Positions 5,977 through 62,734 of a stretch of 64,000 bases of DNA are shown piece after piece (the first letter of the stretch is position 1; each line of letters starts with the position of its first letter). The notes below the pieces were generated by a model. That model saw only the letters and a list, made by a program, of their open reading frames with translations, had not been told where the DNA came from and made no database searches. Source of the DNA: Paramoeba atlantica (lineage: Eukaryota > Protista > Discosea); the NCBI GenBank assembly GCA_977017575.1, contig CDRNVI010000087.1, forward strand, positions 248,001 to 312,000. The letters are read 5' to 3'. The position numbers and the translations under genes are program-made.

Positions 5977-6094
5977 ATTCTACAAAAACAGTTTCGTCGC
6001 ATCAATCAGTAAAATTCATGGGCGTCATGGAAGTAAGAATTGACAAAAAATGTCAATCTTCTTCTCAAAAGTGGCTACTGAAGGCTTCTGAAAA

Positions 6095-12025: not shown

Positions 12026-12044
12026 CAACAAGGTACAGAAACTG
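12026..12044 (-). other. Spliced-leader relic (19 nt) at 5' end of retroelement
   Basis: Minus strand CAGTTTCTGTACCTTGTTG, then a 28-nt UTR and the ATG at 11997. Confidence 0.8.
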
Positions 12045-18029: not shown

Positions 18030-18783
18030 AGGTACGTTGATATCTACAGTGGGGAATAGGCACGGAAAACGTCAGCATACAAAAAATACTTCAACGGTTG
18101 CAAAGATATAATACATTGTGTTAGATGGGCCTATTTGAACAATAAATAGCGTTATAATAGGCGCAATAATGCTTCACTTTGACCATAAAATAATAATATA
18201 GTGTTAGTTTGAATATTATCTTGTTATTTATAAAAAATAATTACATATTCGCTTATTCTGAAAATTGGTAATGTAAACGTTTGAACGGCGGCCATTCTCA
18301 TGTATTGGTCGCTTTGCTCTTGCATAACTTCCGCATGCCACCTTTTCTTCATCACGCTTTTCAGAGGAATAAATTATTGTTCGGAGAATATTTTTTTCGG
18401 AGAATGGTTTACTGTTACTATTTTGTCAGGGCGCGGAATAACATCTAAACTGATATTTATACGGATATTTTCTTGGATTTTTCCATGTTTTGTCTCATAC
18501 TTCTCAAGACCATTAGAGCTACACTTTTTCCCCATACTTAAATTTAGCTTGTATTATTGCAACGCGCGATATTTTGTGCTTACCCATACAGTAATAGTCA
18601 ACACAATAAGCTTAAAATATGATAATGACTAGTACAGTGATTATTTTCTGTATCTTTATTTTAAGAAATTTTATTTATCCGTGCATTTAAAAACAATTCA
18701 ATGCTGACACACGCGACCCCTTCCCTCACGGCCTTCATCTTAGCTTCAATCCACCCGAAAAGGGTAGATTGAACCGGTAACCA

Positions 18784-19544
18784 TTCTGTCCAAAGTTCTG
18801 CAGGTGTCAATGAGTATCGACGACTACGATAACTGTTTCATTTATCAGCGCCTTGATGCGTTGAATGATGATGTCTACTGCATCTTGTGGGCTATACGCT
18901 TTTGCAACAGCACGTCCGACAGCGGTATTATCTGTTAAAATAAAAGCGACGGATGGATTGTGTGCCATCAACTGATTTTTCACAACCCTTTTTCGAAGGC
19001 TATAGCCTCGTCCATAGCAATCGGAAGTTCCTCCCCTTGCAAACTTTGATATTCAACACCTCTTTCATTTCTAAATACTCCTCTTCGTAAGGCAGTAATC
19101 TCATCACTCAGAGTGTAAGTAGCCCAACGGGTAGGTGTGGGATCGACTGTTATGCTCAAAATAGAATCTTTTTATGTGGTATAGATGCGATTTTGCATGG
19201 GACCACAAAGGCTTTAATGACAATATCAAATGTTTCATAGAATCGACAGGACTCTTGATTTCGTCCAATTCCGCGTCCCAGTTGACCATTTTGCCAAGAG
19301 AACTCTGAGCTTTCGATGCTCTCCCGAGTCCTATACGGTCCGCTGCCACTACTGATCCCGCGAAGCGGTAAAAACCTAGGAGGCTAAAGTACGTACGAGG
19401 AGTGTATTTCATTGTTGTCCGCACTATTTGATGCCATGGTGGTAAGGGAGTTCAGCACACGCATATCTAATATCGCCCGAGCCTTTGATTCAGTTTTCAG
19501 CACGGCCAAATACTTAGATAGAACAGGTATTGTGCCAGTGGGGT
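18784..19544 (-). pseudogene. YR-retroelement RT-RNase H relic (unit 3)
   Basis: Copy at +5844. Confidence 0.65.
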
Positions 19545-20225
19545 TGCTTTGAAGTCCTCAAGAGCGCCACACGACGTGAGGTACGCCAAGTGCCGAAACC
19601 AACGTTTTCCGAATGTATTAGTTGTGTTCCGATGTATTAGTTGTGATGGGCAGTGGTTCCTTATTCTGAAGAGGGTCCCTATTCAGAAGGCTAGTCGCGT
19701 GCACTGTATAAGGTGTATTGGCTATGGATGTGCCAAGCTCAAATCTGCCACCTCCTACGGTTTTTAACTCCGCAAGAGGTATATCGTTGTCCGCTATTCT
19801 CCCGCGAACGCCGGCCGTTTCTTTGCTAGAGAACGAAACATGATGCAAGACAATACCTGGACCCGAACTACGCGTACTATCTAATTGTGCAAAGTCTCTC
19901 TTTTTGATTATTGAGCTCTCACGACACGAATTTTATACCCCCCCGGAAATTGGTGACCCCCCTGTATAGTTACTATAAACTTTTTTTAAAAACTTTAAAA
20001 AGGTTCGGCGAAAGATTTTCGCCAAGTTGATATTTTAGTTAATTGTTTTTCCGGAAAAAAATCCGATCTTGGTGGACCCTTCCTGTAGATACCGGGGGGT
20101 TATTTGTTCACCTTTTCAGTAAGCGGTCGTAGTAAGTAGGTGCCTCCACAGTCATCCCAGTGTGAAACACAACCTGTAATTGTACTTATTTACACTACTT
20201 CAAGGTTAGGTAAACATTGATTATT

Positions 20226-20951
20226 ATGATGTTTTGCTCACTGCTTTCGGCTGATGTAACGGAACCGTTAAGAAAGGAAGCCCGAAAAGAAACGAACTCT
20301 TCTGACACGACGCTTTCCACAAGTAGTTCTAATGTGACTGGAAAATCTCGTCCATCCAAAGTCAGTGCCGTATCGTTACCCGTGGAGTACGATTTGATGA
20401 GACTCGTAGAAAACCCTCCACGCTCATGGTCCACCGATACTCCGGGATGTAGATGGGATGGGGTCAGATGTAACGACAAGGGCGACGTGATTTGGATGAA
20501 CTGGAGTGGCAGGATGGGCGAGGACAGTAGCAAGAAACTGCAAGGTCAGTTCAATGTAAAATATTTGCCGTACGAACTGAAACATTTACGCCTAACGGGA
20601 AATTCTCTGTCGGGTGAGTTTCCGTTCGATCAGTTGCCTCCGAAATTGGAAGACATTGACATATCGAGGAACCAGTTCACGGGTACTCCAGATTTTCGTC
20701 ATTTGCCACCCTTTCTAGTCTATCTTAATATGTCCGACAATAGATTTCATGGTCATATTGAATTTGATTTCGTGCACGAAAACTTGCGTCAAATGAGCTT
20801 AGCTTTTAATGCAGAACTTGAAGGCTTCCTAAAAATCAGAGACGAGATAAAGAATCTGTATTATACTGTAGCACGAACAAAGATTACAGTAAGCAATGGT
20901 GTGATGGTCCTAAATCGACCGATCGGGAGCGTTTGTGGAATATGTGGATGA
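20226..20951 (+). CDS. LRR protein, array copy 3
   Basis: Translation identical to copy 1. Confidence 0.85.
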   Translation: MMFCSLLSADVTEPLRKEARKETNSSDTTLSTSSSNVTGKSRPSKVSAVSLPVEYDLMRLVENPPRSWSTDTPGCRWDGVRCNDKGDVIWMNWSGRMGEDSSKKLQGQFNVKYLPYELKHLRLTGNSLSGEFPFDQLPPKLEDIDISRNQFTGTPDFRHLPPFLVYLNMSDNRFHGHIEFDFVHENLRQMSLAFNAELEGFLKIRDEIKNLYYTVARTKITVSNGVMVLNRPIGSVCGICG

Positions 20952-21705
20952 AGGTACGTTGATATCTACAGTGGGGAATAGGCACGGAAAACGTCAGCAT
21001 ACAAAAAATACTTCAACGGTTGCAAAGATATAATACATTGTGTTAGATGGGCCTATTTGAACAATAAATAGCGTTATAATAGGCGCAATAATGCTTCACT
21101 TTGACCATAAAATAATAATATAGTGTTAGTTTGAATATTATCTTGTTATTTATAAAAAATAATTACATATTCGCTTATTCTGAAAATTGGTAATGTAAAC
21201 GTTTGAACGGCGGCCATTCTCATGTATTGGTCGCTTTGCTCTTGCATAACTTCCGCATGCCACCTTTTCTTCATCACGCTTTTCAGAGGAATAAATTATT
21301 GTTCGGAGAATATTTTTTTCGGAGAATGGTTTACTGTTACTATTTTGTCAGGGCGCGGAATAACATCTAAACTGATATTTATACGGATATTTTCTTGGAT
21401 TTTTCCATGTTTTGTCTCATACTTCTCAAGACCATTAGAGCTACACTTTTTCCCCATACTTAAATTTAGCTTGTATTATTGCAACGCGCGATATTTTGTG
21501 CTTACCCATACAGTAATAGTCAACACAATAAGCTTAAAATATGATAATGACTAGTACAGTGATTATTTTCTGTATCTTTATTTTAAGAAATTTTATTTAT
21601 CCGTGCATTTAAAAACAATTCAATGCTGACACACGCGACCCCTTCCCTCACGGCCTTCATCTTAGCTTCAATCCACCCGAAAAGGGTAGATTGAACCGGT
21701 AACCA

Positions 21706-22466
21706 TTCTGTCCAAAGTTCTGCAGGTGTCAATGAGTATCGACGACTACGATAACTGTTTCATTTATCAGCGCCTTGATGCGTTGAATGATGATGTCTAC
21801 TGCATCTTGTGGGCTATACGCTTTTGCAACAGCACGTCCGACAGCGGTATTATCTGTTAAAATAAAAGCGACGGATGGATTGTGTGCCATCAACTGATTT
21901 TTCACAACCCTTTTTCGAAGGCTATAGCCTCGTCCATAGCAATCGGAAGTTCCTCCCCTTGCAAACTTTGATATTCAACACCTCTTTCATTTCTAAATAC
22001 TCCTCTTCGTAAGGCAGTAATCTCATCACTCAGAGTGTAAGTAGCCCAACGGGTAGGTGTGGGATCGACTGTTATGCTCAAAATAGAATCTTTTTATGTG
22101 GTATAGATGCGATTTTGCATGGGACCACAAAGGCTTTAATGACAATATCAAATGTTTCATAGAATCGACAGGACTCTTGATTTCGTCCAATTCCGCGTCC
22201 CAGTTGACCATTTTGCCAAGAGAACTCTGAGCTTTCGATGCTCTCCCGAGTCCTATACGGTCCGCTGCCACTACTGATCCCGCGAAGCGGTAAAAACCTA
22301 GGAGGCTAAAGTACGTACGAGGAGTGTATTTCATTGTTGTCCGCACTATTTGATGCCATGGTGGTAAGGGAGTTCAGCACACGCATATCTAATATCGCCC
22401 GAGCCTTTGATTCAGTTTTCAGCACGGCCAAATACTTAGATAGAACAGGTATTGTGCCAGTGGGGT
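21706..22466 (-). pseudogene. YR-retroelement RT-RNase H relic (unit 4)
   Basis: Copy at +8766. Confidence 0.65.
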
Positions 22467-23147
22467 TGCTTTGAAGTCCTCAAGAGCGCCACACGACGTG
22501 AGGTACGCCAAGTGCCGAAACCAACGTTTTCCGAATGTATTAGTTGTGTTCCGATGTATTAGTTGTGATGGGCAGTGGTTCCTTATTCTGAAGAGGGTCC
22601 CTATTCAGAAGGCTAGTCGCGTGCACTGTATAAGGTGTATTGGCTATGGATGTGCCAAGCTCAAATCTGCCACCTCCTACGGTTTTTAACTCCGCAAGAG
22701 GTATATCGTTGTCCGCTATTCTCCCGCGAACGCCGGCCGTTTCTTTGCTAGAGAACGAAACATGGTGCAAGACAATACCTGGACCCGAACTACGCGTACT
22801 ATCTAATTGTGCAAAGTCTCTCTTTTTGATTATTGAGCTCTCACGACACGAATTTTATACCCCCCCGGAAATTGGTGACCCCCCTGTATAGTTACTATAA
22901 ACTTTTTTTAAAAACTTTAAAAAGGTTCGGCGAAAGATTTTCGCCAAGTTGATATTTTAGTTAATTGTTTTTCCGGAAAAAAATCCGATCTTGGTGGACC
23001 CTTCCTGTAGATACCGGGGGGTTATTTGTTCACCTTTTCAGTAAGCGGTCGTAGTAAGTAGGTGCCTCCACAGTCATCCCAGTGTGAAACACAACCTGTA
23101 ATTGTACTTATTTACACTACTTCAAGGTTAGGTAAACATTGATTATT

Positions 23148-23873
23148 ATGATGTTTTGCTCACTGCTTTCGGCTGATGTAACGGAACCGTTAAGAAAGGA
23201 AGCCCGAAAAGAAACGAACTCTTCTGACACGACGCTTTCCACAAGTAGTTCTAATGTGACTGGAAAATCTCGTCCATCCAAAGTCAGTGCCGTATCGTTA
23301 CCCGTGGAGTACGATTTGATGAGACTCGTAGAAAACCCTCCACGCTCATGGTCCACCGATACTCCGGGATGTAGATGGGATGGGGTCAGATGTAACGACA
23401 AGGGCGACGTGATTTGGATGAACTGGAGTGGCAGGATGGGCGAGGACAGTAGCAAGAAACTGCAAGGTCAGTTCAATGTAAAATATTTGCCGTACGAACT
23501 GAAACATTTACGCCTAACGGGAAATTCTCTGTCGGGTGAGTTTCCGTTCGATCAGTTGCCTCCGAAATTGGAAGACATTGACATATCGAGGAACCAGTTC
23601 ACGGGTACTCCAGATTTTCGTCATTTGCCACCCTTTCTAGTCTATCTTAATATGTCCGACAATAGATTTCATGGTCATATTGAATTTGATTTCGTGCACG
23701 AAAACTTGCGTCAAATGAGCTTAGCTTTTAATGCAGAACTTGAAGGCTTCCTAAAAATCAGAGACGAGATAAAGAATCTGTATTATACTGTAGCACGAAC
23801 AAAGATTACAGTAAGCAATGGTGTGATGGTCCTAAATCGACCGATCGGGAGCGTTTGTGGAATATGTGGATGA
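23148..23873 (+). CDS. LRR protein, array copy 4
   Basis: Translation identical to copy 1. Confidence 0.85.
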   Translation: MMFCSLLSADVTEPLRKEARKETNSSDTTLSTSSSNVTGKSRPSKVSAVSLPVEYDLMRLVENPPRSWSTDTPGCRWDGVRCNDKGDVIWMNWSGRMGEDSSKKLQGQFNVKYLPYELKHLRLTGNSLSGEFPFDQLPPKLEDIDISRNQFTGTPDFRHLPPFLVYLNMSDNRFHGHIEFDFVHENLRQMSLAFNAELEGFLKIRDEIKNLYYTVARTKITVSNGVMVLNRPIGSVCGICG

Positions 23874-24627
23874 AGGTACGTTGATATCTACAGTGGGGAA
23901 TAGGCACGGAAAACGTCAGCATACAAAAAATACTTCAACGGTTGCAAAGATATAATACATTGTGTTAGATGGGCCTATTTGAACAATAAATAGCGTTATA
24001 ATAGGCGCAATAATGCTTCACTTTGACCATAAAATAATAATATAGTGTTCGTTTGAATATTATCTTGTTATTTATAAAAAATAATTACATATTCGCTTAT
24101 TCTGAAAATTGGTAATGTAAACGTTTGAACGGCGGCCATTCTCATGTATTGGTCGCTTTGCTCTTGCATAACTTCCGCATGCCACCTTTTCTTCATCACG
24201 CTTTTCAGAGGAATAAATTATTGTTCGGAGAATATTTTTTTCGGAGAATGGTTTACTGTTACTATTTTGTCAGGGCGCGGAATAACATCTAAACTGATAT
24301 TTATACGGATATTTTCTTGGATTTTTCCATGTTTTGTCTCATACTTCTCAAGACCATTAGAGCTACACTTTTTCCCCATACTTAAATTTAGCTTGTATTA
24401 TTGCAACGCGCGATATTTTGTGCTTACCCATACAGTAATAGTCAACACAATAAGCTTAAAATATGATAATGACTAGTACAGTGATTATTTTCTGTATCTT
24501 TATTTTAAGAAATTTTATTTATCCGTGCATTTAAAAACAATTCAATGCTGACACACGCGACCCCTTCCCTCACGGCCTTCATCTTAGCTTCAATCCACCC
24601 GAAAAGGGTAGATTGAACCGGTAACCA

Positions 24628-25388
24628 TTCTGTCCAAAGTTCTGCAGGTGTCAATGAGTATCGACGACTACGATAACTGTTTCATTTATCAGCGCCTTGA
24701 TGCGTTGAATGATGATGTCTACTGCATCTTGTGGGCTATACGCTTTTGCAACAGCACGTCCGACAGCGGTATTATCTGTTAAAATAAAAGCGACGGATGG
24801 ATTGTGTGCCATCAACTGATTTTTCACAACCCTTTTTCGAAGGCTATAGCCTCGTCCATAGCAATCGGAAGTTCCTCCCCTTGCAAACTTTGATATTCAA
24901 CACCTCTTTCATTTCTAAATACTCCTCTTCGTAAGGCAGTAATCTCATCACTCAGAGTGTAAGTAGCCCAACGGGTAGGTGTGGGATCGACTGTTATGCT
25001 CAAAATAGAATCTTTTTATGTGGTATAGATGCGATTTTGCATGGGACCACAAAGGCTTTAATGACAATATCAAATGTTTCATAGAATCGACAGGACTCTT
25101 GATTTCGTCCAATTCCGCGTCCCAGTTGACCATTTTGCCAAGAGAACTCTGAGCTTTCGATGCTCTCCCGAGTCCTATACGGTCCGCTGCCACTACTGAT
25201 CCCGCGAAGCGGTAAAAACCTAGGAGGCTAAAGTACGTACGAGGAGTGTATTTCATTGTTGTCCGCACTATTTGATGCCATGGTGGTAAGGGAGTTCAGC
25301 ACACGCATATCTAATATCGCCCGAGCCTTTGATTCAGTTTTCAGCACGGCCAAATACTTAGATAGAACAGGTATTGTGCCAGTGGGGT
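24628..25388 (-). pseudogene. YR-retroelement RT-RNase H relic (unit 5)
   Basis: Copy at +11688. Confidence 0.65.
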
Positions 25389-26069
25389 TGCTTTGAAGTC
25401 CTCAAGAGCGCCACACGACGTGAGGTACGCCAAGTGCCGAAACCAACGTTTTCCGAATGTATTAGTTGTGTTCCGATGTATTAGTTGTGATGGGCAGTGG
25501 TTCCTTATTCTGAAGAGGGTCCCTATTCAGAAGGCTAGTCGCGTGCACTGTATAAGGTGTATTGGCTATGGATGTGCCAAGCTCAAATCTGCCACCTCCT
25601 ACGGTTTTTAACTCCGCAAGAGGTATATCGTTGTCCGCTATTCTCCCGCGAACGCCGGCCGTTTCTTTGCTAGAGAACGAAACATGGTGCAAGACAATAC
25701 CTGGACCCGAACTACGCGTACTATCTAATTGTGCAAAGTCTCTCTTTTTGATTATTGAGCTCTCACGACACGAATTTTATACCCCCCCGGAAATTGGTGA
25801 CCCCCCTGTATAGTTACTATAAACTTTTTTTAAAAACTTTAAAAAGGTTCGGCGAAAGATTTTCGCCAAGTTGATATTTTAGTTAATTGTTTTTCCGGAA
25901 AAAAATCCGATCTTGGTGGACCCTTCCTGTAGATACCGGGGGGTTATTTGTTCACCTTTTCAGTAAGCGGTCGTAGTAAGTAGGTGCCTCCACAGTCATC
26001 CCAGTGTGAAACACAACCTGTAATTGTACTTATTTACACTACTTCAAGGTTAGGTAAACATTGATTATT

Positions 26070-26801
26070 ATGATGTTTTGCTCACTGCTTTCGGCTGATG
26101 TAACGGAACCGTTAAGAAAGGAAGCCCGAAAAGAAACGAACTCTTCTGACACGACGCTTTCCACAAGTAGTTCTAATGTGACTGGAACATCTCGTCCATC
26201 CAAAGTCAGTGCCGTATCGTTACCCGTGGAGTACGATTTGATGAGACTCGTAGAAAACCCTCCACGCTCATGGTCCACCGATACTCCGGGATGTAGATGG
26301 GATGGGGTCAGATGTAACGACAAGGGCGACGTGATTTTGATGAACTGGAGTGGCAGGATGGGCGAGGACAGTAGCAAGAAACTGCAAGGTCGGCTCAATG
26401 TAAAATATTTGCCGTACGAACTGAAACATTTACACCTAACGGGAAATTCTCTGTCGGGTGAGTTTCCGTTCGATCAGTTGCCTCCGAAATTGGAAGACAT
26501 TGACATATCGAGGAACCAGTTCACGGGTACTCCAGATTTTCGTCATTTGCCACCCTTTCTAGTCTATCTTAATATGTCCGACAATAGATTTCATGGTCAT
26601 ATTGAATTTGATTTCGTGCACGAAAACTTGCGTCAAATGAGCTTAGCTTTTAATGCAGAACTTGAAGGCTTCCTAAAAATCAGAGACGAGATAAAGAATC
26701 TGTATTATACTGTAGCACGAACAAAGATTACAGTAAGCAATGGTGTGATGGTCCGAAATCGACCGAGCGGGAGCGTTTGTGGAATACATGGACCAAGGTA
26801 A
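26070..26801 (+). CDS. LRR protein, array copy 5 (variant)
   Basis: Several substitutions (K>T, W>L, QF>RL, R>H) and a different C-terminus (GIHGPR). Confidence 0.85.
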   Translation: MMFCSLLSADVTEPLRKEARKETNSSDTTLSTSSSNVTGTSRPSKVSAVSLPVEYDLMRLVENPPRSWSTDTPGCRWDGVRCNDKGDVILMNWSGRMGEDSSKKLQGRLNVKYLPYELKHLHLTGNSLSGEFPFDQLPPKLEDIDISRNQFTGTPDFRHLPPFLVYLNMSDNRFHGHIEFDFVHENLRQMSLAFNAELEGFLKIRDEIKNLYYTVARTKITVSNGVMVRNRPSGSVCGIHGPR

Positions 26802-29286: not shown

Positions 29287-29772
29287 TAGTTGAAAATAAA
29301 TAGAAGAGATTCTAATTGCATAGTTGGTTTAATATTAATTTTACATTGTATCACAGCAAGTACGTAACTTAAATTGTAAACACCAGTAATTGGATCTTAC
29401 TGAATGTTCGTCTTGTACAAGCGATCTCACCTTAGCCGTAAAAATATAGCCTACACATACAATTTAAATATTTTTATAACGAACGTTTACCAATTACAGT
29501 TCACTAACTGAAAACGTGTACAATTCGACGATAGAAAATATCAATTTAAGTTTTATTTATCTCCTACTTTCCCTATTCAGAGCCATGTAATGAACTTGAA
29601 AAGCCCCATGACCAAAAAATCCCCAGGAAGCCAGTGCTACGAAAGGCACCAGTTACTTCTACAAACACATTAGATATACTCTTACATGTTACGGGTTATA
29701 ACACAGTTTTATTTTGAAAGGACTTTACCTAATAATTTTACATATACGTTTTATATCCTTGAATCTCACATT

Positions 29773-30125
29773 ATGGACGATGGGTCAGACCTCAGACGTG
29801 GAAAAGTACGCCGTGAATTATTACCACAGGAAAACGTACTTGAAGAATTTTTAAGAGGGGAAACACTTCGACATCCTACATGGATTACAGAAAAGAAACG
29901 ATTCTTTGGAGGCATCAAAAAGGTGTCTCCATGTACATGGAGAGGCATCACGTGCGACCCGGAAAATAATATCATCAGCATCATTGGGAGTTACGGCTCT
30001 CCGATCCTTGAAGGGAATTTAAGTTGGCGTGATCTCCCACCCACACTGGTCAGGTTGCAGTTACATCAGTACCCCAAACTTCGCGGCGTTATCGACTTGA
30101 CCAATTTTCCTCCATGTCTTAATCG
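29773..30125 (+). pseudogene. LRR gene, 5' half (split by retroelement)
   Basis: SPCTWRGITCD...LEGNLSWRDLPPTL...GVIDLTNFPPCLNR ends at the SL relic of the element. Confidence 0.8.
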
Positions 30126-30153
30126 ATAAAGATACAGTTTCTGTACCTTGTTG
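30126..30153 (+). other. Spliced-leader relic (28 nt)
   Basis: ATAAAGATACAGTTTCTGTACCTTGTTG; compare the trypanosomatid SL 3' end ...CAGTTTCTGTACT(T/A)TATTG. Confidence 0.85.
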
Positions 30154-30188
30154 CTTGTTGTTTTTTTTTTCTAAACTGTATCTCCAAC

Positions 30189-33100
30189 ATGTCCGACAAT
30201 CCCACTTCTCCGCGGAATGTTGACGATGCGCTGCCGGACCTCCCTCGAGCTTCCGGCGGCGTACAGACGCAAACCCTGCACTTCGTCCACAGCAGATCAC
30301 GGCCCGTTAAGATACGACGCCTCACTGATCTGCATTGGACGTATTTCCCGGACATTAAGACCGCGAGCCAATGGTCCATAGTCAGACAAAGAATTCCATC
30401 CCGACAAGGTGCGGAAGTAGCTATCACGAAACTGCTGAGTAAGTGTGCATCAGCACACGATCTCGTAGCTGAACACACCACCTTTGAGGAGCTCGTGGAG
30501 CATAACGCGTGCGACTATATAAAGGTTACGAGGAATGAACACCCCTACACCATCTCCCTGCACCCAAACTGGGTCTCGATGCACACCGACCCTGCCCTCA
30601 GCCTGCGAGACAAGTATTCCACCCCAAGCACGCTAAATAAGGCAGCCCTGAAGGCCATACAGGGAAGAGAAATATCGGGACTGAAGCACATAAAAATCGA
30701 GCTCATAAGAAACCAGGAATCACCAAGCACTGAAACCGCGGAATACGAGAAGCCGCGCAGGATAGAAGAATCCCCTCATAAAATCGCTCCCCCAAGAACG
30801 CCAAAGCCCCAGAAGGGTAAAACTGATCAACACAAGGGACCATGCAAGCACCGCTGCTTGAGCAAACTCTCCTGTGCTCACAAGTGCTGTAAAATCTATG
30901 GACCGCTGCCGAGTGAGGACGCTACATATTGCTCATCAGAAGGAGCACTGCCACCTGAGATCGTCCCAGAAGGAACCGCAAATAACACCAACCCAGGAGA
31001 TCCAAGTAAATATACGCCGGAAAGCACCTCTTCGGAACCTGCGACACATACAAAATGCAACACACATGCGTCGAACGGTCACCGCAAACCTACCGTACAT
31101 GATGAACCTTCCGCCCCGCATCCATGTCGTCATTCCTGCAAGAACAAAGCTACGTGCGGACATCTATGTTGTAAACGAGGCATTAAATCTTCGCATCTGG
31201 ACTTTCCAACTTCCGCGACTTCTACAAATGAAAATCTACAAACGAAGCTATGCAACGCAATATCACGGGAGGGCGCTCACACAACTTTAGAACGCGGGTT
31301 AAACCCGGCAACACAACCTCCACCTGATGTCCAAATGGTCCCACCTGCCGAGGGAACCCAAACAGAGGGGGCCGACGTCAACCAGAACTCCGTAACACCA
31401 AACCTCAACGACAACGATAGTGATTTCCTACGGAAAGCTGCTAAATTGGCTGGTTGGGCCATGCGTAACGTTATAAACTTCTACCGCCTTCCCAATACTA
31501 GCATCAACGGACCAACAAACGGGAACCAGCAAACTGTGCAAATCACGGATGCGACGTGCACTGACAACAAAGATAGCACTATGCACAACCCTGCGCCACT
31601 CCCTGACGCGACGCCTAGCAGTGCAGCGCATTACCCACAGAACACCGTACACGTGGAACCATGTCGTCACCGATGCTCGGCCAAGCTACGCTGTCTGCAT
31701 AAATGCTGTAAGATATATGGACCGCTTAGGTACAATGAGCCCCTCGTCCGACCTTCTCCTCTTCCTCCTCCTTCGCACACTACGGAACTTCGAGTTCCAT
31801 CATGGGATGAAACCAGCGAAAGGGAGCGCCTCCATCTGCTTGAACAACACAAAACCATAACAGGGGGAAAAATGTGCCTAAAGCTTAACGACGATCAATG
31901 GAAGGCGGTTGAAAACAAGGCATACGATACATGTCGAAGGCTGCAATACCCAACAGTAGACACCCCGGAAATCGCAGTGAAAAACGCAGAACTCCTGGGT
32001 GCCTCTCTGGCAGTGGCGGCATACGAAATTGCACAAGAGATTAACCCCACTAAAGGTTTCCTCACGCGATCGAAACGCGGACACGCCCGATTCAAGCACC
32101 GGCCACTTTCGTCTGAAAATGCAGCCCACGAAATGACGAAACACATACGCAACCAAAAGAAATCACTACGCTACACACACGGAACGGAACGCCAAGAGCT
32201 CCGTCGCTGCATTAAGGAAAGTGAGAAGCTAGAGAAAACATACACAGAAGAGGCCAAAGCACATAGGAAACAGCTAGAAAGACAATGGGCCCATAGCAGA
32301 TTCACGCGGAACCCGTGGACAGCAGCATCCGAGGCCTTGGACCGCCCCTCGACCTCCGCCACCGCCGAATATCCTGAATGCGATTTACCTACGATAGAAA
32401 AATATTTCACAGAAAGCACAGCACCTCCCGCCGAAGAGCATCGCCTGCCGCCGAACAACGTACTTGGTCCTCTACCCATCAACGAAATGGAATGGTCTCC
32501 ACTGACCGCGCAAGATGTCGCAGACGCGCTCAGCAGCAAAAGAAGCGCAAGCGCGCCAGGGCGTGATACGATTACAAACGCACTTCTAAAACAATGCAAA
32601 TACCTGTACCCCCGTATAGCGAACACGTTTAATGATCTTCTGCGCTACGGCGTCTGCCCGCCATGCTGGTCCTCCGCCGTAGTTAAACTCATTCACAAAG
32701 GAGGCGAAAAACACATCCCGAAAAACTGGAGACCTATCTCCCTGACTAGCGCTCTAGGCAAACTTTTCAATAGCATGATCGGACACCAAATTTTGACGCA
32801 TACCGTGTCCTCCGGCCTCCTAGATACAAGCGTTCAAAAAGGCTTTCTTCCGAAGATGAGTGGTACACTGGAACACACGCAAGCTCTCTCCGAAATACTA
32901 CAATATTACCGCCGAAACAAAAGGCAATATTGTCTCACGCAGTTTGATCTCAGCAATGCATTCGGCTCGGTCCCCCATAACATCATCTTCGAGGCACTGC
33001 GATGGGCAAACGTCTCGCCACAAATCGTGTCCTACGTTGAAAGCATGTATTCACATGCGGAAATGCGTATTAAGTGTGTCGAAGGTTTGTCACGTGCTAT

Positions 33101-34775
33101 ACCGATACACAGAGGCGTACTACAAGGTGATACCCTGTCGCCCATAATTTTCAACTTAGTGATGGAAACTGTACTACGATACCTCAAGCAATCGTGCCCC
33201 CGGTATGGCCTTGACTACCCAGATACTCCAAGGCATTTCCTGAAAGCCTACGTTGACGACCTGACGATACTGACTAGCAGCGATACCGACATGCAGCACG
33301 CGACCAACACACTCGAAACTGCACTGAGACGAATAGGACTCTCAATCAACGTAGACAAGAGCCGTACACAGTGCATGTCCATGCGTGAAGGCAGTGAGCA
33401 CCCGGGTTACATGACCAGGAAGCCGAGACTCAGTATCGAAGGCAAAGCGATACCACATATATGTGACCGTGGAAGCACTTTTCTTGGAATGACCATAGCA
33501 CCAGGAGCACAGCAAGCGAAAGAACTTTTCAAAAAGCTGGATGTCAGACTAAGAACATGGCTTCGGAATGTCGACGAGAGTGCACACAGTCTCCCCGAAA
33601 AACTTTGGATCTACAACAGAGCGATCGTATCCCGTCTGCGCTACGCCCTCACCGTTCACCCGTGTGTCACTTTCAACTTTGTATTGCGATTGCAGAAAAG
33701 AATTACACGTCACCTTAAGAAATGGATCAATGCAGCATCCACGACTTGCACCGAAATTCTTTATACTGAACGAGGGTGGAACCTTAAAAGTTTATCCAAG
33801 CTGTGGTCCGAATGCTCTATCCTAGCCTTAACACAGATGCACAAGTCGCGGGACCCATCGATACAGGCGGCACTACGAGCCCGAATCAAGCAAGAAGAAG
33901 AAAAACGATCCTCTGGTTATATTCGTCCAAGCGCTGACGCCATTCAACACCTTCATGACGCGCGGAAGGCGCAACAGATAGCCCGTGATAACCATGAATC
34001 TTACGTCATAAATCAGCTTCAGAGACGGGCACCGACAGCAGCAAAGTGGTGGAGCCTCCCCTCCGAGGCTGATCTCGCGAAAGAGTTCTCAGCGGCCCTG
34101 AACAACCTCAACAGTGAAAAACTTTCTCGCTTCGCAGCTTCAGTACTAACGCTTTCACCCCTACCATCCAGAACCAATCTTCGGCTTTGGGGTCTCCGGC
34201 GTGAGAGTGTAACATGTCCCATATGTAAACTCGAACCTCAAACAACAAGGCACGTGCTCTCGGGGTGCAAAGAGTCCCTTCAGCAAGGGAGATACACCCT
34301 CCGTCATGACATGTTACTTGAAGAGCTCGGAAAACACTTGCTGCGTTCGCCGTATACCAAGAGCGTACACCTAGATATCCCCGGATTTAGGAATGCCCCG
34401 GCATGGCTCGGCACCCGTGAGGACCTTCTTCGCCCCGACGGTTTGATTACACTTAAGGATGGAAGTGAGTTCATCATTGAGCTCACTGTGCCCTGGGAAG
34501 AGAACCAGTCTCAGGCGCACGAGGGCAAATCCCGTAAATATAATGCTCTCTTCCATGAACGACGCATTAATCACCCTAGGACGGCCCTTGTTGTATTCGA
34601 AGTGGGAGCCCGCGGCTCGTTACTCACATCTTGTCGAAACCTCAACCTCCTCTTTGACGAGGACACAAAGCTTGCGGAAAAATGTCGAGAAAGTCTAATG
34701 CAGACCGCCCTTCGAGGCAGTTTCATTATCTGGCAGAACCGCGAGTCTGCCGTTTGGACAGAAGGACGGGTATAA
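30189..34775 (+). CDS. RT-RLE polyprotein, 1528 aa, with three Cys/His zinc-finger repeats in the N-terminus
   Basis: NWRPISLTSALGKLF, QKGFLP, FDLSNAFGSVPH, GVLQGDTLSP, YVDD; CPIC..QTTRHVLSGC; GRYTLRHD; RPDG...IIELTVPWEE...K..KY. Confidence 0.95.
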   Translation: MSDNPTSPRNVDDALPDLPRASGGVQTQTLHFVHSRSRPVKIRRLTDLHWTYFPDIKTASQWSIVRQRIPSRQGAEVAITKLLSKCASAHDLVAEHTTFEELVEHNACDYIKVTRNEHPYTISLHPNWVSMHTDPALSLRDKYSTPSTLNKAALKAIQGREISGLKHIKIELIRNQESPSTETAEYEKPRRIEESPHKIAPPRTPKPQKGKTDQHKGPCKHRCLSKLSCAHKCCKIYGPLPSEDATYCSSEGALPPEIVPEGTANNTNPGDPSKYTPESTSSEPATHTKCNTHASNGHRKPTVHDEPSAPHPCRHSCKNKATCGHLCCKRGIKSSHLDFPTSATSTNENLQTKLCNAISREGAHTTLERGLNPATQPPPDVQMVPPAEGTQTEGADVNQNSVTPNLNDNDSDFLRKAAKLAGWAMRNVINFYRLPNTSINGPTNGNQQTVQITDATCTDNKDSTMHNPAPLPDATPSSAAHYPQNTVHVEPCRHRCSAKLRCLHKCCKIYGPLRYNEPLVRPSPLPPPSHTTELRVPSWDETSERERLHLLEQHKTITGGKMCLKLNDDQWKAVENKAYDTCRRLQYPTVDTPEIAVKNAELLGASLAVAAYEIAQEINPTKGFLTRSKRGHARFKHRPLSSENAAHEMTKHIRNQKKSLRYTHGTERQELRRCIKESEKLEKTYTEEAKAHRKQLERQWAHSRFTRNPWTAASEALDRPSTSATAEYPECDLPTIEKYFTESTAPPAEEHRLPPNNVLGPLPINEMEWSPLTAQDVADALSSKRSASAPGRDTITNALLKQCKYLYPRIANTFNDLLRYGVCPPCWSSAVVKLIHKGGEKHIPKNWRPISLTSALGKLFNSMIGHQILTHTVSSGLLDTSVQKGFLPKMSGTLEHTQALSEILQYYRRNKRQYCLTQFDLSNAFGSVPHNIIFEALRWANVSPQIVSYVESMYSHAEMRIKCVEGLSRAIPIHRGVLQGDTLSPIIFNLVMETVLRYLKQSCPRYGLDYPDTPRHFLKAYVDDLTILTSSDTDMQHATNTLETALRRIGLSINVDKSRTQCMSMREGSEHPGYMTRKPRLSIEGKAIPHICDRGSTFLGMTIAPGAQQAKELFKKLDVRLRTWLRNVDESAHSLPEKLWIYNRAIVSRLRYALTVHPCVTFNFVLRLQKRITRHLKKWINAASTTCTEILYTERGWNLKSLSKLWSECSILALTQMHKSRDPSIQAALRARIKQEEEKRSSGYIRPSADAIQHLHDARKAQQIARDNHESYVINQLQRRAPTAAKWWSLPSEADLAKEFSAALNNLNSEKLSRFAASVLTLSPLPSRTNLRLWGLRRESVTCPICKLEPQTTRHVLSGCKESLQQGRYTLRHDMLLEELGKHLLRSPYTKSVHLDIPGFRNAPAWLGTREDLLRPDGLITLKDGSEFIIELTVPWEENQSQAHEGKSRKYNALFHERRINHPRTALVVFEVGARGSLLTSCRNLNLLFDEDTKLAEKCRESLMQTALRGSFIIWQNRESAVWTEGRV

Positions 34776-34868
34776 CGTCTGTAAAAGATAGGTCTGGGCA
34801 GCGTCATATGCGCCCCCCAGGCCTATCCGCATATTCTCTGCCTTATAAAGGTATGATAAATTAAATAA

Positions 34869-35402
34869 GTCATCAAGACGGGATTGTCCGGGACGGTAAC
34901 GTTCGTCCATCTCCCGCTCATGATAAAAAACATAAAACTCAATGAGAGCCTTTTTACAGGCGAGATCGATTTCGCCACCCTACCGGTAAATTTAGGATTG
35001 CTGGGATTACGCGGGAACCAGTTCACGGGCCTTGTCGCACTCACCGCATTGCCCGCGGGGCTACGGACGTTTGACGTGGCCTCAAACCATTTTACGGGAC
35101 AGCTCGATCTAAGTGCTTTGCCTCCGAATATGGTACATCTCAATCTCAGTAGCAATGCCTTCGAGGGGGCGCTCGTCTTCCACGCGAATCTTCCGTCCTC
35201 GTTGCTCTATCTCGGACTCTATGGCAATGCGCTCTCCGGGATTGTTGATTTTTCTCCCATCATGGAGCACAAAATCTTAACGCGGTGTCGTTACCTTTCA
35301 CGCACGTATGGGATTAATTTGTACAAAAACCATTTTACGGATTGGGGCCCAAAAAATAGTAAATTTGGAGGAAGATTGCCGATGGGTGTGCTGTTTACTT
35401 AG
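34869..35402 (+). pseudogene. LRR gene, 3' half
   Basis: VIKTGLSGTVTFVHLP...LGLLGLRGNQFTG...LRTFDVASNHFTG resumes right after the element tail. Confidence 0.8.
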
Positions 35403-36385: not shown

Positions 36386-36583
36386 TTGGTTTTTTTAAAA
36401 CTCATAAAAATATATTTTCGCACAATTTCGTTTCTTTGCGGCAGCGAATAATAGCGGGAACGTCTAGAACGCGAAATTCTACACGAAAATGTGCTATGTT
36501 ACCCCCTCCACACAGATTTCTGACTATGATAACTTATCCGTGACGCGGGGTATAATTTTGTGCTTCATTTCACATTGTTCTTC

Positions 36584-37324
36584 ATGTTCTATACCTTTCT
36601 AGCAGCGGATGTTCCAGAGTCGCGTGTCATAACTCGCGCAGCCAAAGTGAGCGCGACGAATCTTCCGTCAGAATACGATCTTGTGCGACTGGTGCGTAAC
36701 ATTGAGAATCCACATACCTCGTGGAGTACATCAACCCCGGCTTGCGAGTGGGATGGCGTGTCTTGTAACAAAGAGGCTGAGATAACGGGGATTAATTGGC
36801 CCTCAAGAAAACTAACCGGTGAGCTAAGCTTTAGTTATCTACCGAAAACACTGCATACTTTGTACGCTTATGTAAACAAGCTTTCCGGTGAATTGCAATT
36901 TGATACGTTTCCTGTTACATGTATGATGCGTACGTTAAGTCTTCGGGACAATGAGTTAAGTGGACCATTGGACTTAACGGCTCTTCCTCCAAAACTGAAG
37001 ACGTTAATACTCTCTGGGAACCAATTTACGGGTGACGTTTGTTTGACGAAATTACCGTCAGAGCTCATAAATCTTTGTCTTGGTAGGAACAAGCTATCCG
37101 GAGAGCTTTGCTTTAGTGAACTACCGAAGGTCGTTATGCTCCGACTTGAAAACAATAACTTTTCCGGAAATATTGATCTAACAGGAGTTCCACCTTCATT
37201 GGGAGACCTTCATTTGTCCAACAATGTGAATCTATTTGGCGAAATAGAAGAGCGTCTTTTTTCCGAAAAACTGCGCAAAGGTCTGAAAATTGAAAACACC
37301 AACATTACGCGTTTAACATCTTAA
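36584..37324 (+). CDS. LRR protein
   Basis: MFYTFLAADVPE..., TPACEWDGVSC, six to seven LRRs, intact frame. Confidence 0.88.
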   Translation: MFYTFLAADVPESRVITRAAKVSATNLPSEYDLVRLVRNIENPHTSWSTSTPACEWDGVSCNKEAEITGINWPSRKLTGELSFSYLPKTLHTLYAYVNKLSGELQFDTFPVTCMMRTLSLRDNELSGPLDLTALPPKLKTLILSGNQFTGDVCLTKLPSELINLCLGRNKLSGELCFSELPKVVMLRLENNNFSGNIDLTGVPPSLGDLHLSNNVNLFGEIEERLFSEKLRKGLKIENTNITRLTS

Positions 37325-39491: not shown

Positions 39492-40514
39492 TCATTCCTG
39501 CGAGCTGTCTACCAACAGAGTTGGTCGAGACCCCTCCTTGAACTCACATACCTCATCTTGGGAGACCCCTGGGAGAAGGATATTCGAAAACAATTCTTTA
39601 GGGGTTGCGTCTTGGAGTACATCGAGGGGTCGTCTGTTGATGGAATCGCACACTGTTTGAAGAACAGCTTGGGTAATCCCGGTGAATTTAAGCGCTTTCG
39701 GATAAAAATCGCGGACTACCCCATTAAAACGCTTTACACCACCCTTCTCCCAACTTGCGTACGGTTTGCAGAAGAAAGAGACGCATCCGAACGACTCATT
39801 GACTTTCTCATGCTTCGCGAATTCTGTTCCGTTGTCATACGTAACAGTATGAACGAAGAAGCCCCGTAAAGCCTTGTTGACCTCCTGGGCAACAAGTTCG
39901 GAATTCTTTGAGGAAAGAATGCGTAGGATACCGAAACGGCTCTTCCGTTCTACTAAACTTAGGAAATAGCCTGAGTGTTTCGTACCTTCAATTAAATCGC
40001 ACTCCCAGTCTCCATATCTGGAGCGGATGATGATAATATCAGGACATTCGCTGATGTCAGTACAGTTCGGGATTTTTAATCGATTAAGACCACGACGCCG
40101 TCTTCCGCGACCACCTTTGCGTCGAAGGTATTGCGTCACGTCGCCGCCTTTATCTTCCCGTTTGATCTGGCCATATATTGCCACGCGCGAAATCTTAAAT
40201 CCGTCGTCTTTCCATAGCGTTTTCGCGATTTGCTGTGGACTAAAGCGTTCCTTTAGCAACGAGATGACTTTGTCCTTTATTCGACCACATACCTTGGGGC
40301 GTTTGTGCTTTCGCGTGGTCTTGGTAACCATGGCCGCTTTCTGAGCCCGTTTAGCGTCATAGTGGCCCTTTCGAGAGCCTCGAGTGAGCTCACGACTTAG
40401 AGTTGATTGCGAAACGCCGAGCTTTTCAGCAATCTCTTCTTGAGAAAAATTTTGCTGGTTGTATAACACTTCTATCGTTCCGCAGTCCTCTGCATCCAGT
40501 TGCTTTTTGGTCAT
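39492..40514 (-). CDS. IS30-family transposase (bacterial type), third catalytic residue E>K
   Basis: From ATG 40514: HTH SQEEIAEKLGVSQSTLSREL, FSPQQIA, IS..AIY, R.RYGDWECDLIEG, LVERKSRF, TYDNGTEFA, FCKPYASWEKGGVKRFNG, INRRP. Spacing is DD33, with K at the E position. Confidence 0.85.
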   Translation of the reverse strand: MTKKQLDAEDCGTIEVLYNQQNFSQEEIAEKLGVSQSTLSRELTRGSRKGHYDAKRAQKAAMVTKTTRKHKRPKVCGRIKDKVISLLKERFSPQQIAKTLWKDDGFKISRVAIYGQIKREDKGGDVTQYLRRKGGRGRRRRGLNRLKIPNCTDISECPDIIIIRSRYGDWECDLIEGTKHSGYFLSLVERKSRFGILRILSSKNSELVAQEVNKALRGFFVHTVTYDNGTEFAKHEKVNESFGCVSFFCKPYASWEKGGVKRFNGVVRDFYPKALKFTGITQAVLQTVCDSINRRPLDVLQDATPKELFSNILLPGVSQDEVCEFKEGSRPTLLVDSSQE

Positions 40515-40860
40515 AAGGAGCACAAAAAAAGAGCAGAAAGTAAAGGAAGACAAATTAATACTCCATAGGATGTAATGCAAACAGATAGTGGCAGACGGTG
40601 ACAGATGGTGGCAGACGGTGGCAGACAAAAAGACCACTTGGTACACTATTTTTTTCGTCTAGCATAGATAAGCCGCTTGCCAACATTACCTTTTCGAAAG
40701 TTCACATCCCCCCCCCCTGACCAGTCGTTCAAAAAACACGATCGACCCTGTAATATCGAGTTTCTAAAAAATCCAAAACGTAGCACTACGTCGTTAGATG
40801 AGTTCTTTGATAAACGAGAGGAATAAAGCAAAAAAATGTGTTACCAAGTTAAAAATCTAA

Positions 40861-41710: not shown

Positions 41711-42207
41711 TACTGATTCTTCGTCTGTATAAAATTTTGTTTTGTCATGCACTTGTAGTGCAGAGGTAAGCCCCAGTGTCTTTACCCGCATACGACGGGT
41801 GGATCACGCGAGGGTTCGTCTTCGCCTGTGGTAAGTGGGTGCAGAGAGATCGGTTGTCATGTGCGGGTGCAGAGAGCTGCGACAGAGCCGAGGTGCAGAG
41901 AGCCGGGAGGCTCGTGGGCGGAAGACACGTCTAGTGGTCCTCAAGGGAGGCCACCGTGACGCATTACCTCCTCGGAAAGGCGGGCACGGGAGAAAGAGAA
42001 GCCGAGAGAGGGAAGCACACTCACTCCAGGGGAGTGAGTCGGGAAGGGGTGAAGGGGTGGAAGCGCGTCCCCTGCTTCAACAATAGAGAGGGACAGTTTC
42101 GGCCTTAGTGCCGGCCGGCAACGGGCATAAAAATACAGTAACAGTATGCCCGTTGCCGGGGAAAGAAAGGATGAACTAAGGAAAAAGGACGAACAAGGTA
42201 CAGAAAC
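41711..42207 (-). mobile_element. SL-headed SINE-like element, copy A, 17-18 bp TSD
   Basis: Flanked by (C)GGAAGTATAAAGGGAGG at 41693..41710 and 42207..42224. SL relic 42192..42207. 3' hairpin 41748..41762. No ORF of note. Confidence 0.8.
42176..42191 (-). promoter_or_regulatory. Candidate trans-splice acceptor (polypyrimidine tract + AG)
   Basis: Minus strand CGTCCTTTTTCCTTAG|TTCATCC. Copy B has the SL joined directly to TTCATCC. The same site is at 62631..62646. Confidence 0.7.
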
Positions 42208-42279
42208 GGAAGTATAAAGGGAGGGGAGACAGTACGTTTGAAATTAGTATGCCTAGAACTTACGGTTTTGTTTTACACC

Positions 42280-42756: not shown

Positions 42757-45700
42757 TGTTATGATTATCATGCAGTAAACTGCAGAGATTAAAACAGAAG
42801 AAGATCGGGTGTATCCCTTTAGTGCGCCCAAAACGCACTTCTTCTTCTGACATGCCCACCTCATTGGAAGCTTGGCATATACCAGTTGGGGTTCTCCCGT
42901 TGTTGGTATATGTGGAAACTTCCTAGTAGTGCTCGCTGCACTAGTTTTTCCCTACACTTGGAGGCTTCAGCCTTAGTTCCAAAGAGGGAGTTTATCGCAC
43001 GTGCGGAGGAGTTCAGCTTTCCTCTCGCACCAACTTCAAAAACCAGGAGAAAGGTCGACGGATTCGCTAGCCTGCGCTGCGTGTAAAGATGTGTGTACTT
43101 ACGAACCTTCCGTTCGTGGGCGTATTCCAAGTTCTCTTCCCATGGGGATGTAAGTTCAATTATGTACTCGGACCCGTTGTGCAGCCGCACCCATCCATCT
43201 GGTCTCAGTTCAGTTCCGTGCGAGAGCCAGGGAGGAGAGTTGCGGTACAGGTCCACATCAAAGTGGTACGAGGATGTGGTGGGAGAGTTGGCAACAGCGT
43301 CTGCAAGGGCAAGTAGTATAAGATCATGGCGGTATGTATACCGTCCTTGCTCAAGGGACACTTTGCAGCCTGTTAAGATGTGGCGCGGGGTCTGGGTCGC
43401 TTCGCCACAAATTGGACATGTGACGTTCGTGTGTGACGATATGCCCCACCGGCGGAGAGAGGAACGCGTAGGAAGTGGAGTTTGAGTGAGCACGGATGCC
43501 GCGAAGCGAGAGAGGGAGGAGCTTTTGATATTACATAGGACAGAAGCGAAGTCTTTCGCTAGGTCGCTTTCTGTAGCCATTTGAAACCATTCGCAGGCTA
43601 TGGTGCTGCGGCGTTGTACTGACTCGATCAAGTGCCTTTCATGCTCATCGTTAATTGTTCTTCGGAGGTTATCGGGGTCACCCCGCATATCATAGAACCT
43701 CGCTGCGGGCCTCACATGTCCTGATGAGCGTCTACGTTGCTCGTTGGCTATCCTGTGTCGTAATGCGTACTGTACCGCTGGGTCACGAGATTTGGACATT
43801 TGCGAGATGGCTGTGGCCGTACACTGCAGCCAAAGCTTAGAGATGCTCATCATCCGCCAGCCGCGCTCAGAGTAGAAGAGTTCACTTGTGGCCGTTTTCG
43901 CAACGTTAAGTCATTTCCTGATTTGGTTTGTGGCCAACTTTTGGAGACGTAGGATATAGTTGAAAGTGATCCCTGTGTTCACAGTCAGGACGTACCGGAG
44001 ACGGGAAATTATTGCGTTATTGTAGATCCACATTTTCGCTGCTTGATCAAATGCGCTTTCCGTAATGTTTCCGAGCCACTTCCGCAACTTACATTGCAGG
44101 GTTTTGAATAGAACTTTTCCTTGTTGTGCCCCAGGAGCTAGCGTCATTCCGAGAAAGAGACTTCCCTTGTCACAGATATGTGGAATTACCTGCCCATCCG
44201 TGACTATGCGAGGGCGATGTGTCTTGTAACCTCCGTTGAGGACTGCCATGTGTTGCACTCGGCACTTCCCGACGTTCAGCCGGAGCCCCATAGTGGTGAG
44301 AACCCGGTGCAGAACGTTGGTCGCCCGCTGTAATTCGTCAGGGGTGCCCGCGACAAGGGTTAGGTCATCAGCAAACGCTTTTATGAAGGTTTCTCGCGTG
44401 TCCCATACAATACCATATTTTGGCAGGCTAGATCGGAGGTACCGAAGGACCACTTCCATTGCGATGAGAAAGAGAACAGGAGATAAGGTATCGCCTTGGA
44501 GAAAGCCACGTGTTATAGAGATATCTCCGGTCAATCCCTCTGCACACTTCACTTGCATGGAAGCTCCCGTGTACAGGGCTCGAACTGGTACAGGGCACCA
44601 ACTCTAACGTTGGTGGGAAGGCGAGCCCATTCCAGGGCAGAGAAGAGCACCTAGTGTGGGAGTGAACCAAAGGCATTCTTGAGGTCGTACTGTCCAAGGC
44701 AGTATTGGCGTTTGTGTTGCCGTTGGTGGTCAAGAAGTTCACAAAGCGCTTGGGTATGTTCGATACAGCCATTCACACCAGGCAGGAATCCCTTCTGGAT
44801 TGTAGTATCTATTACTCCCGATCCTGTGACATGTTCCTGAATCCGGTGGCTGACAATGCTGTGGAAGAGTTTCCCGAGACAGCTCGTAAGGCTTATGGGC
44901 CGCCAGTTGGAAACGTTCTGCGTAGGGCCACTTTTATGCACAAGAAGGGTAACCGCTTTCTTCCAGTTGTCGGGACAGACCCCAAATTTGAAGAGGTCGT
45001 TAAACGATTGGGGTAAGAAAGGGTGTAGCGCGGGGCAGCGCTTTAGCAGCGCATTGCTAACGGTGTCAGAGCCTGGTGCCGCTGTATGGCGCTTCGATGA
45101 TACAGCGGCTGCGATCGTGGCGCTATCTATTGCTTCCCATGTCATGTCTCTATCCGCCTGGGGGCCCAGAAGCTCTGTTGGAGGAAGTCCACATTCTTGA
45201 GTTGTTTCCATAGAGCCCCTGAAATAGGACTCTACTTCGGCGGGGGCGATGTCTGGATGCTTCCCATTACGTTGCTGTGCTTCTTTTTCGTGGTTATCAA
45301 TACATTCACTACCTGCCGTCCAGGGATTCCTTTGAAATCTTGTGTGGGCCCAGCGCTGAGCCATCTCCAGTCGCTGCGCTTCTCCTTCTGCCATGTAGAC
45401 CTTCTGAAGTTTTACAGCCTCTTTCAGTTGACCCTTGACGTGGTTCCGCTCGGCCCGTCCGTGGGTATATCGCAATGTTGCTTTCAGTTGTCGAACGTGA
45501 GTTTCAAGCTGCTTGGCCGAGCGCTCCGCTGCCAGGGGGCGTGTTCTGCGACGGTTGTGACGCGCGTTTGTTCTAATACGGAATCCCCCGGTTGGATCTG
45601 CCTCGCTGGCCACCTCGTATGCCGACACCGCGAGACATGCCGTGAGTAGTTCTGCTTGTGCGGTAGCCTCGTCGGCACTCTCTGCGGGACTCAGAAATTT

Positions 45701-62662: not shown

Positions 62663-62734
62663 GGAAGTATAAAGGGAGGGGAGACAGTACGTTTGAAATT
62701 AGTATGCCTAGAACTTACGGTTTTGTTTTACACT

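Follow-up and report, generated by a model that had tools for sequence, protein, structure and literature searches.

How does a retrotransposon that sits inside a protein-coding gene come to carry the spliced leader of its host at its own 5' end? The question is raised by a 64,000-nt stretch of Paramoeba atlantica DNA (contig CDRNVI010000087.1, positions 248,001 to 312,000 of the forward strand; hereafter the window), in which three divergent retrotransposons, among them an intact element at 30126-34865 that divides a leucine-rich repeat (LRR) gene, begin with the same short sequence. The original prediction held that this sequence is a spliced leader (SL) that was trans-spliced onto the element RNA and then reverse-transcribed along with it. 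We favor, with moderate confidence and from the sequence alone, the reading that the copies are complementary DNAs (cDNAs) of SL-bearing RNA, most likely trans-spliced.

The sequence shared by the element heads

All genome-wide counts refer to the source genome (45.7 Mb; a protist genome of kinetoplastid type), in which we conducted exact-pattern and BLAST searches; loci with L numbers (L001 onward) are sampled SL-bearing places elsewhere in that genome. The 19-mer CAGTTTCTGTACCTTGTTG, common to the element heads, occurs in 768 exact copies, 36 of which run on into a GTATGAG intron start, and a genome-wide pattern search for a conserved upstream block followed by SL exon nt 1-10 returned 35 places. 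These SL RNA genes form tandem arrays on contigs C97, C107, C11, C74, C3 and C24, where they adjoin 5S ribosomal RNA genes on the opposite strand. The 107-nt SL RNA unit is predicted to form three stem-loops, the first of which contains the splice donor (z = -5.8). The exon itself is 38 nt long, beginning AACT and finishing TTG, and its 3' part is identical at 13 of 15 positions to the Trypanosoma brucei 15-mer TTTCTGTACTTTATT (PMC11613528). In a 2015 sequencing run that we guess to be RNA, a very deep contig fuses the 38-nt SL to an unrelated leader; a literature search for the SL string gave no match. Given the intron-bearing, 5S-linked arrays, the SL-like fold, the T. brucei match and the deep SL contig, we conclude that the sequence common to the element heads is the 3' end of the host SL exon, identical to the exon of the intron-bearing SL RNA genes, as had been proposed. 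The approximately 730 further copies of the 19-mer are not SL genes.

Within the window, the 19-mer was found exactly at the three sites for which it had been claimed, 12026-12044(-), 30135-30153(+) and 47665-47683(-), and also at 57533-57551(-), while matches with two mismatches lie at 42191(-) and 62646(-). Chance matching was ruled out, since shuffled sequence yielded none. The expected common stop at TTG was observed, followed by unrelated, T-rich leaders of 28-45 nt up to the ATG, and direct reading bore out both the lack of a GT donor behind the window heads and the lack of an SL at the 3' side. None of the window heads has SL nt 1-10, the upstream block or the intron that mark an SL RNA gene. 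Instead, transcript sequence rather than intron follows the SL, which stops precisely at the 3' end of the exon, as in an SL-tagged retro-copy.

Three further SL loci were seen in the course of these searches. L045 (G000:C6:27083-27117) is a retro-copy of unspliced SL RNA, with the exon from nt 3, the intron and an A-run end and without the upstream block. A variant SL gene with TGTCCC replacing TGTACC (L051:1771-1830) stands 297 bp past a normal one. On C74, the SL units are 7.3 kb apart, versus 2.6-2.7 kb elsewhere, as if the spacer held a 4.7-kb element.

The intact element and its LRR target

The element at 30126-34865 is 4.74 kb long (ends ±2) and, judged by its sequence, is a recently active non-LTR retrotransposon (one lacking long terminal repeats) of the R2 supergroup with a single open reading frame (ORF). 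In the 1528-aa ORF, three Cx3Cx6CxHxCC knuckles come first and are followed by a reverse transcriptase (RT), then by a CCHC knuckle and finally by a restriction-like endonuclease (RLE; PD..E..K). Pfam RVT_1 matched residues 836-1073 at 3e-32, accompanied by a weak zf-RVT match, and residues 772-1478 aligned with the R2 proteins 9nl3/9dou (E = 4e-32) across the CCHC and PD..D/E..K region, the alignment to 9nl3_A covering CPIC...HVLSGC and RPDGLI...ELTV...K. Pfam gave no Exo_endo_phos match, the sign of an apurinic/apyrimidinic (AP) endonuclease, in this ORF. An RT of the long interspersed element (LINE) type combined with a CCHC and PD-(D/E)xK endonuclease is the R2-supergroup arrangement. Homology and atlas searches returned only unnamed or arthropod relatives, the nearest outside the genome being unnamed sequences with ~30% identity. 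R2 itself shares the domain order, a structured 3' end replacing poly(A), near-blunt site-specific insertion and a host-derived 5' sequence. However, R2 targets 28S ribosomal DNA and obtains its 5' end via co-transcription and a ribozyme, whereas no Rfam family, ribozymes included, was found at gathering score anywhere in the window.

The 3' end of this element is common to nine places at 99-100% identity, and the similarity stops at 34865-34867, always after ...GATAAATTAAA and without poly(A). Its 5' end is common to seven places at 98-100% identity; the 5' ends of copies on other contigs are known from BLAST ranges and pattern hits, and the BLAST ranges place all seven starts within the SL, at nt 9-17. 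Six other copies with 98-99% identity keep the junction of SL and leader. SL nt 9-10 are matched, too, by the CG at 30124-30125, which nevertheless fits a codon of the host LRR gene. Target duplications in the family are 0-2 bp, and insertion is blunt or nearly blunt.

The window copy divides its LRR gene between ...FPPCLN and VIKTGLSG..., and all eight distinct 3' flanks in the family proved to be LRR-family coding sequence in sense orientation and frame. Six of the eight start at one point of the repeat, right before (L/V)-x-x-N-x-(F/L)-x-G, and in one the insertion lies within the N-terminal cap motif of an LRR gene. LRR sequence at eight of eight sites points to a sequence-specific target. 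The claim that the flanks are LRR or Ulp1 coding DNA was thus upheld for LRR; Ulp1 at the 12044 flank could not be confirmed. No empty-site joint for the 30126 element was seen in the sequencing runs, all of which are assembled contigs. We also considered whether the LRR targets resemble the SL, which would have linked them to an SL-gene ancestor, and rejected the idea because local alignments were no better than shuffles at seven of the eight sites. A likeness in targeting exists to TcTREZO of Trypanosoma cruzi, a site-specific retroelement whose copies lie mostly in MASP, a single family of surface-protein genes (PMC5814959), although TcTREZO differs in structure from the elements here and no SL head has been reported for it.

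Taken as a whole, the window is a cluster of LRR genes with many mobile elements. Five tandem LRR gene units of 2922 bp occupy 14373-26801, and ORFs of other mobile elements include an IS30-like transposase (39492-40646), a Tc1/mariner-like ORF (49287-50408) and pogo-like DDE_1 ORFs (8237-9307 and 51713-52363).

Table 1. Features of the SL-headed elements and their surroundings (window positions; L032 lies elsewhere in the genome)
Feature	Position	Strand	Basis or remark
SL head, SL exon nt 11-38 (28 nt)	30126-30153	+	Exact match to SL RNA gene exon
35-nt 5' leader: CTTGTTG (7-nt SL-end repeat), T10 run, unique stretch to ATG	30154-30188	+	Direct reading
Intact ORF, 1528 aa	30189-34775	+	Pfam and R2 alignment
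3' untranslated region, ends TCTCTG-hairpin-TATGA and short A/T tail, without poly(A)	34776-34865	+	Comparison of 9 copies
Upstream half of split LRR gene	29686-30125	+	ORF ending ...GVIDLTNFPPCLN
Downstream half of split LRR gene	34868-35402	+	Frame reads VIKTGLSGTVTFVHLPL...NESLFTGEIDF
Second family, old copy with broken frames	42757-47693	-	tblastn, 27-51% identity to intact ORF
Third family	4254-12044	-	tblastn pieces 11946-9594 and 5239-4355, 39-61% identity
Repeat with palindromic end abutting SL nt 20	12045-12320	.	At least 270 bp
SINE copy, SL nt 15-38 joined straight after internal pyrimidine-AG	57001-57556	-	Compared with 24 SINE heads
Degenerate SL head (2 mismatches), old SINE-like copy	42191-42209	-	Duplicate at 62646-62664
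Shared hairpin tails	34836-34865(+), 4254-4292(-), 42757-42790(-), L032:2036-2070

Sister families, a SINE and the start of the heads

The same exon-end junction recurs in families whose proteins are only 27-60% identical and whose leaders do not align. In the second family, the copy at 42757-47693 carries SL nt 11-38 at 47665-47692, and the extra T at 47693 may be a 1-bp target duplication; comparison with the intact paralogue at 36583-37317 indicated that this copy was inserted precisely, with 0-1 bp duplicated. The third-family copy, which is interrupted by a nested insertion carrying the DDE_1 transposase ORF at 8237-9307, has SL nt 20-38 at 12026-12044. A fourth family (L023 = P0005) has a head of SL nt 12-38 preceded by a (GT)n run. 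Head lengths of 19, 28 and 29 nt had been proposed for the three window elements: the 28 nt at 30126 is correct, while the 29-nt head is 28 nt plus the T at 47693. The 19-nt length also holds, but that head is not a plain truncation against host DNA, because a terminus closely related to that of the abutting repeat recurs at SL nt 20.

This repeat is ~80-85% identical over 270 nt to sequence upstream of the heads of short interspersed elements (SINEs) in L040 and L047, and in L047 the palindromic-end repeat recurs inverted 1.3 kb away. The terminus reads CCAACTCCCT in the window, and a closely related junction, GCAACACCCT followed by SL nt 20, was found at 11 further places, two of which are the SINE copies in L040 and L047; termini of the form ...GCAAC(A/T)CCCT stand next to SL nt 20 at 12 places or more. 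By these features, the repeat at 12045-12320 looks like another mobile element that is associated with this SL position, and it may be a DNA element.

The SINE is 580 bp long and non-coding, starts at SL nt 11-13 and is represented by ~135 places with SL + GTAC. The 24 heads that we examined read SL + GTACATTTTCCCTTTAG and then TTCATC..., and the tail consists of TCTCTG-hairpin-CATGA and a short A-rich run. The design TCTCTG-hairpin-(C/T)ATGA plus A-rich run is common to the SINE and all three window LINE families, with stem letters that differ per family. The SINE therefore has both ends, SL head and hairpin tail, in common with the LINEs, and the shared hairpin is likely the RT recognition signal for both. 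In the window copy at 57001-57556, the SL is joined directly behind the family's internal ...CCCTTTAG, at a pyrimidine-AG that ~135 other copies keep. No other single observation points as clearly to trans-splicing at a canonical acceptor as this junction; alternatively, a 17-nt GT...AG piece may have been removed in cis. At L053, L054 and L059, SINE heads stand right behind the 3' tail or (GT)n tail of RLE LINE copies, as head-to-tail joints.

We then compared where the SL heads start. Across the genome, 17 exact SL matches stop at nt 12, 79 stop at nt 11 and 32 stop at nt 10, while a further 480 extend to nt 9 or beyond. Head length in the sampled loci is bimodal: R2-like LINE and SINE heads measure 19-31 nt with a mode of 28 (~30 heads), and 25 heads of other classes measure 34-38 nt. 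The heads of the R2-like group are not random truncations, and the notion of nested truncations proved too simple in view of the genome-wide pile-up of stops at nt 11; none of these heads extends into nt 1-8. The base ahead of nt 11 is T in 40 of the 79 cases, consistent with either a 1-bp duplication or a preference in target choice. RNase H-resistant cap-proximal RNA, a cap-bound protein or a defined RNA 5' end are possible causes of the nt 11 limit. The long-SL class, which includes LINEs that combine an LsmAD-like N-terminus with a C2H2 finger, is mostly preceded by a poly(A) run, and its poly(A)-type LINEs retain the SL to nt 2-3. In long-SL copies (L001-L030), the cap-adjacent base is A, T or C and varies even inside one family, in keeping with capped RNA having been freshly reverse-transcribed. 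Partial SLs in tandem or inverted were seen at L007, L010, L025 and L029.

Origin of the leader

We read the dispersed copies as cDNAs of SL-headed RNA because the shared sequence is the host SL, divergent families are joined to it at the exon end, the flanks are LRR sequence, the SL genes are intact and the 30126 family is young (7-9 near-identical copies). This part of the original prediction stands; the sequence does not establish, however, that the SL arrived by trans-splicing. What argues for trans-splicing followed by reverse transcription is the exon-end junction in divergent families, the SINE copy with its acceptor and the presence of SL tags across element classes. In SL-using organisms of this kind, every translated mRNA is trans-spliced. 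The element mRNA would be treated in the same way, so that the template RNA would carry the SL, and target-primed reverse transcription would then copy the SL leader into DNA. The machinery of the R2-like lineage would drop the cap-proximal 10 nt, leaving heads that begin at nt 11 or later, and new copies would either gain a fresh SL from correctly spliced source RNA or inherit the 28-nt head of their parent. The relict-DinoSL retrogenes of dinoflagellates are likewise DNA copies of trans-spliced RNAs marked by a 5' SL (PMC5585692, PMC6050394), but they are host genes with stacked relics made at an AG inside the SL, whereas the elements here are autonomous and non-autonomous retrotransposons. 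We rejected such recycling at AGs inside the SL, since the short relics found here (CTTGTTG, TACCTTGTTG) do not come after AG.

Several observations weigh against our preferred reading. Every genomic junction is preceded by TG rather than AG, which bars SL-headed copies from being spliced again at that site, and the 30126-family leader (30154-30188 in the window) contains no AG before the ATG. A 5'-end search among the near-identical copies revealed no source copy that lacks the SL and has an acceptor. Nor does any contig of the putative RNA run lie on the element, although this run consists of assembled contigs only and does not show the element to be silent. Simple run-off reverse transcription would not lead one to expect so sharp a start at nt 11. 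As many as 268 SL copies from several different families continue with the same AATT(ATTT...), which looks inherited rather than independently spliced (examples are L005, L007, L015-L017 and 47665(-) in the window). Finally, one SL gene locus (G000:C41:280814-280890) has an element leader fused to its exon end; an element can thus occupy that position in this genome, which makes it possible for an SL promoter to drive co-transcription here.

The missing AG at the junction and the missing SL-less source copy would be explained if SL nt 11-38 were an inherited 5' module that by now belongs to the element, is transcribed anew from DNA every generation and defines the 5' end; it would have entered once, from a trans-spliced or SL-gene-derived ancestor, and would be kept SL-identical by a need of the element protein or of the translation machinery. 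We think this unlikely but take it seriously, as the nt 11 start is sharp, like a defined RNA 5' end, and the non-coding SINE has the 28-nt head and the 3' hairpin in common with the LINEs, as expected of cis-signals. L1Tc offers a precedent, being a kinetoplastid LINE whose internal 5' element yields transcripts that are usable although unspliced (PMC1874656), and the L1Tc/ingi group with Pr77 resembles our elements in having a conserved 5' module common with non-autonomous partners. Pr77 of L1Tc is nonetheless an internal promoter and not an SL, and L1Tc differs further in its AP endonuclease and its poly(A). Moreover, a neutral 28-mer would not stay SL-identical across families of 27-60% identity, so strong selection would be needed; the SINE copy at 57551 has its SL at a different, canonical acceptor; and other element classes bear full SLs with a variable cap-adjacent base. 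If RT instead passed from the 5' end of unspliced element RNA to a free SL exon (an intermediate of splicing), entering it at the 3' end, this would account for junctions that are exact at the exon 3' end without an AG. T-runs and short SL-end repeats at junctions (CTTGTTG/CTTGTTG at 30126; TACCTTGTTG in L008) are in keeping with such a template jump, and poly(A)- or (GT)n-to-SL head-to-tail joints together with an inverted SL piece suggest frequent jumping. Since the free SL exon is a rare intermediate, and both the nt 11 limit and the SINE copy behind a canonical acceptor would be left unexplained, we regard this as very improbable, the least probable of the explanations weighed here.

The C41 locus bears on the possibility that the SL is co-transcribed target DNA, as in CRE- or SLACS-like elements, with source copies at the exon end of SL RNA genes driven by the SL promoter and no trans-splicing, a scenario that the original prediction had itself named as counting against it. 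At this locus, 26 nt of the SL-gene upstream block precede the full 38-nt exon, whose end runs into AATTATTTTCTTT rather than into the intron. However, the locus is solitary, the only such fusion among 35 promoter-bearing SL genes; its leader (AATTATTTT type) belongs to another LINE group (LsmAD-type) and not to the 30126 family, and it could equally be an insertion whose 5' junction was formed via SL homology. The other promoter-bearing SL genes, those in the arrays, run unbroken from exon to intron in 34 of 34 cases, so that a check for family copies inside the SL RNA gene arrays came back empty; none of the 36 SL + intron units is opened at nt 10-12, and CRE-style occupancy was thus found in neither set. 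All seven full-length 30126-family copies have truncated heads and non-SL flanks. Taken together, these findings make co-transcription highly unlikely.

The CRE clade (CRE1/2, SLACS, CZAR), compared here by architecture and insertion site, resembles our elements as single-ORF non-LTR elements with RT and RLE in SL-using euglenozoans. Its members sit inside SL RNA genes and make target duplications, usually with poly(A), whereas the elements here lie in LRR genes with the SL piece on their own 5' end, duplicate 0-2 bp (0-1 bp at the second-family site) and finish in a hairpin tail ending ...GATAAATTAAA. The kinetoplastid SL exon is 39 nt long. CZAR and SLACS insert between SL nt 11 and 12 (PMC5814959, PMC12278014), which leaves 28 nt of exon downstream, the head length seen here and a point in favor of co-transcription; because no SL gene is opened at nt 10-12, we treat this 28-nt link as a lead only. 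One distinctly unlikely extension of it is that SL nt 11-38 is a working 5' signal: the R2-like protein would recognize the SL in RNA or cDNA and trim or end the copy at nt 10/11, the SLACS/CZAR cut position, and a lineage once resident in SL genes would have made its target into its 5' end, shared it with the SINE and moved to a protein-coding gene family.

New here are the peak of heads at nt 11, the lack of AG at the junction, the lack of family copies in SL genes and the repeat that abuts the 19-nt head. The SL tags are a built-in record of the RNAs reverse-transcribed in a trans-splicing organism; here it comprises ~730 tagged copies in 46 Mb, from autonomous LINEs, a SINE and further element classes. 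They also pose the puzzle of how an element without a splice acceptor in its copies keeps yielding SL-headed RNA. The nt 11 limit in one lineage, versus full leaders in another, gives a handle on 5'-end completion by R2-like elements, the least understood step of target-primed reverse transcription. Finally, the preference for one LRR position makes this a rare RLE element specialized on a protein-coding gene family, and such an LRR-targeting family may shape the evolution of the LRR genes themselves.

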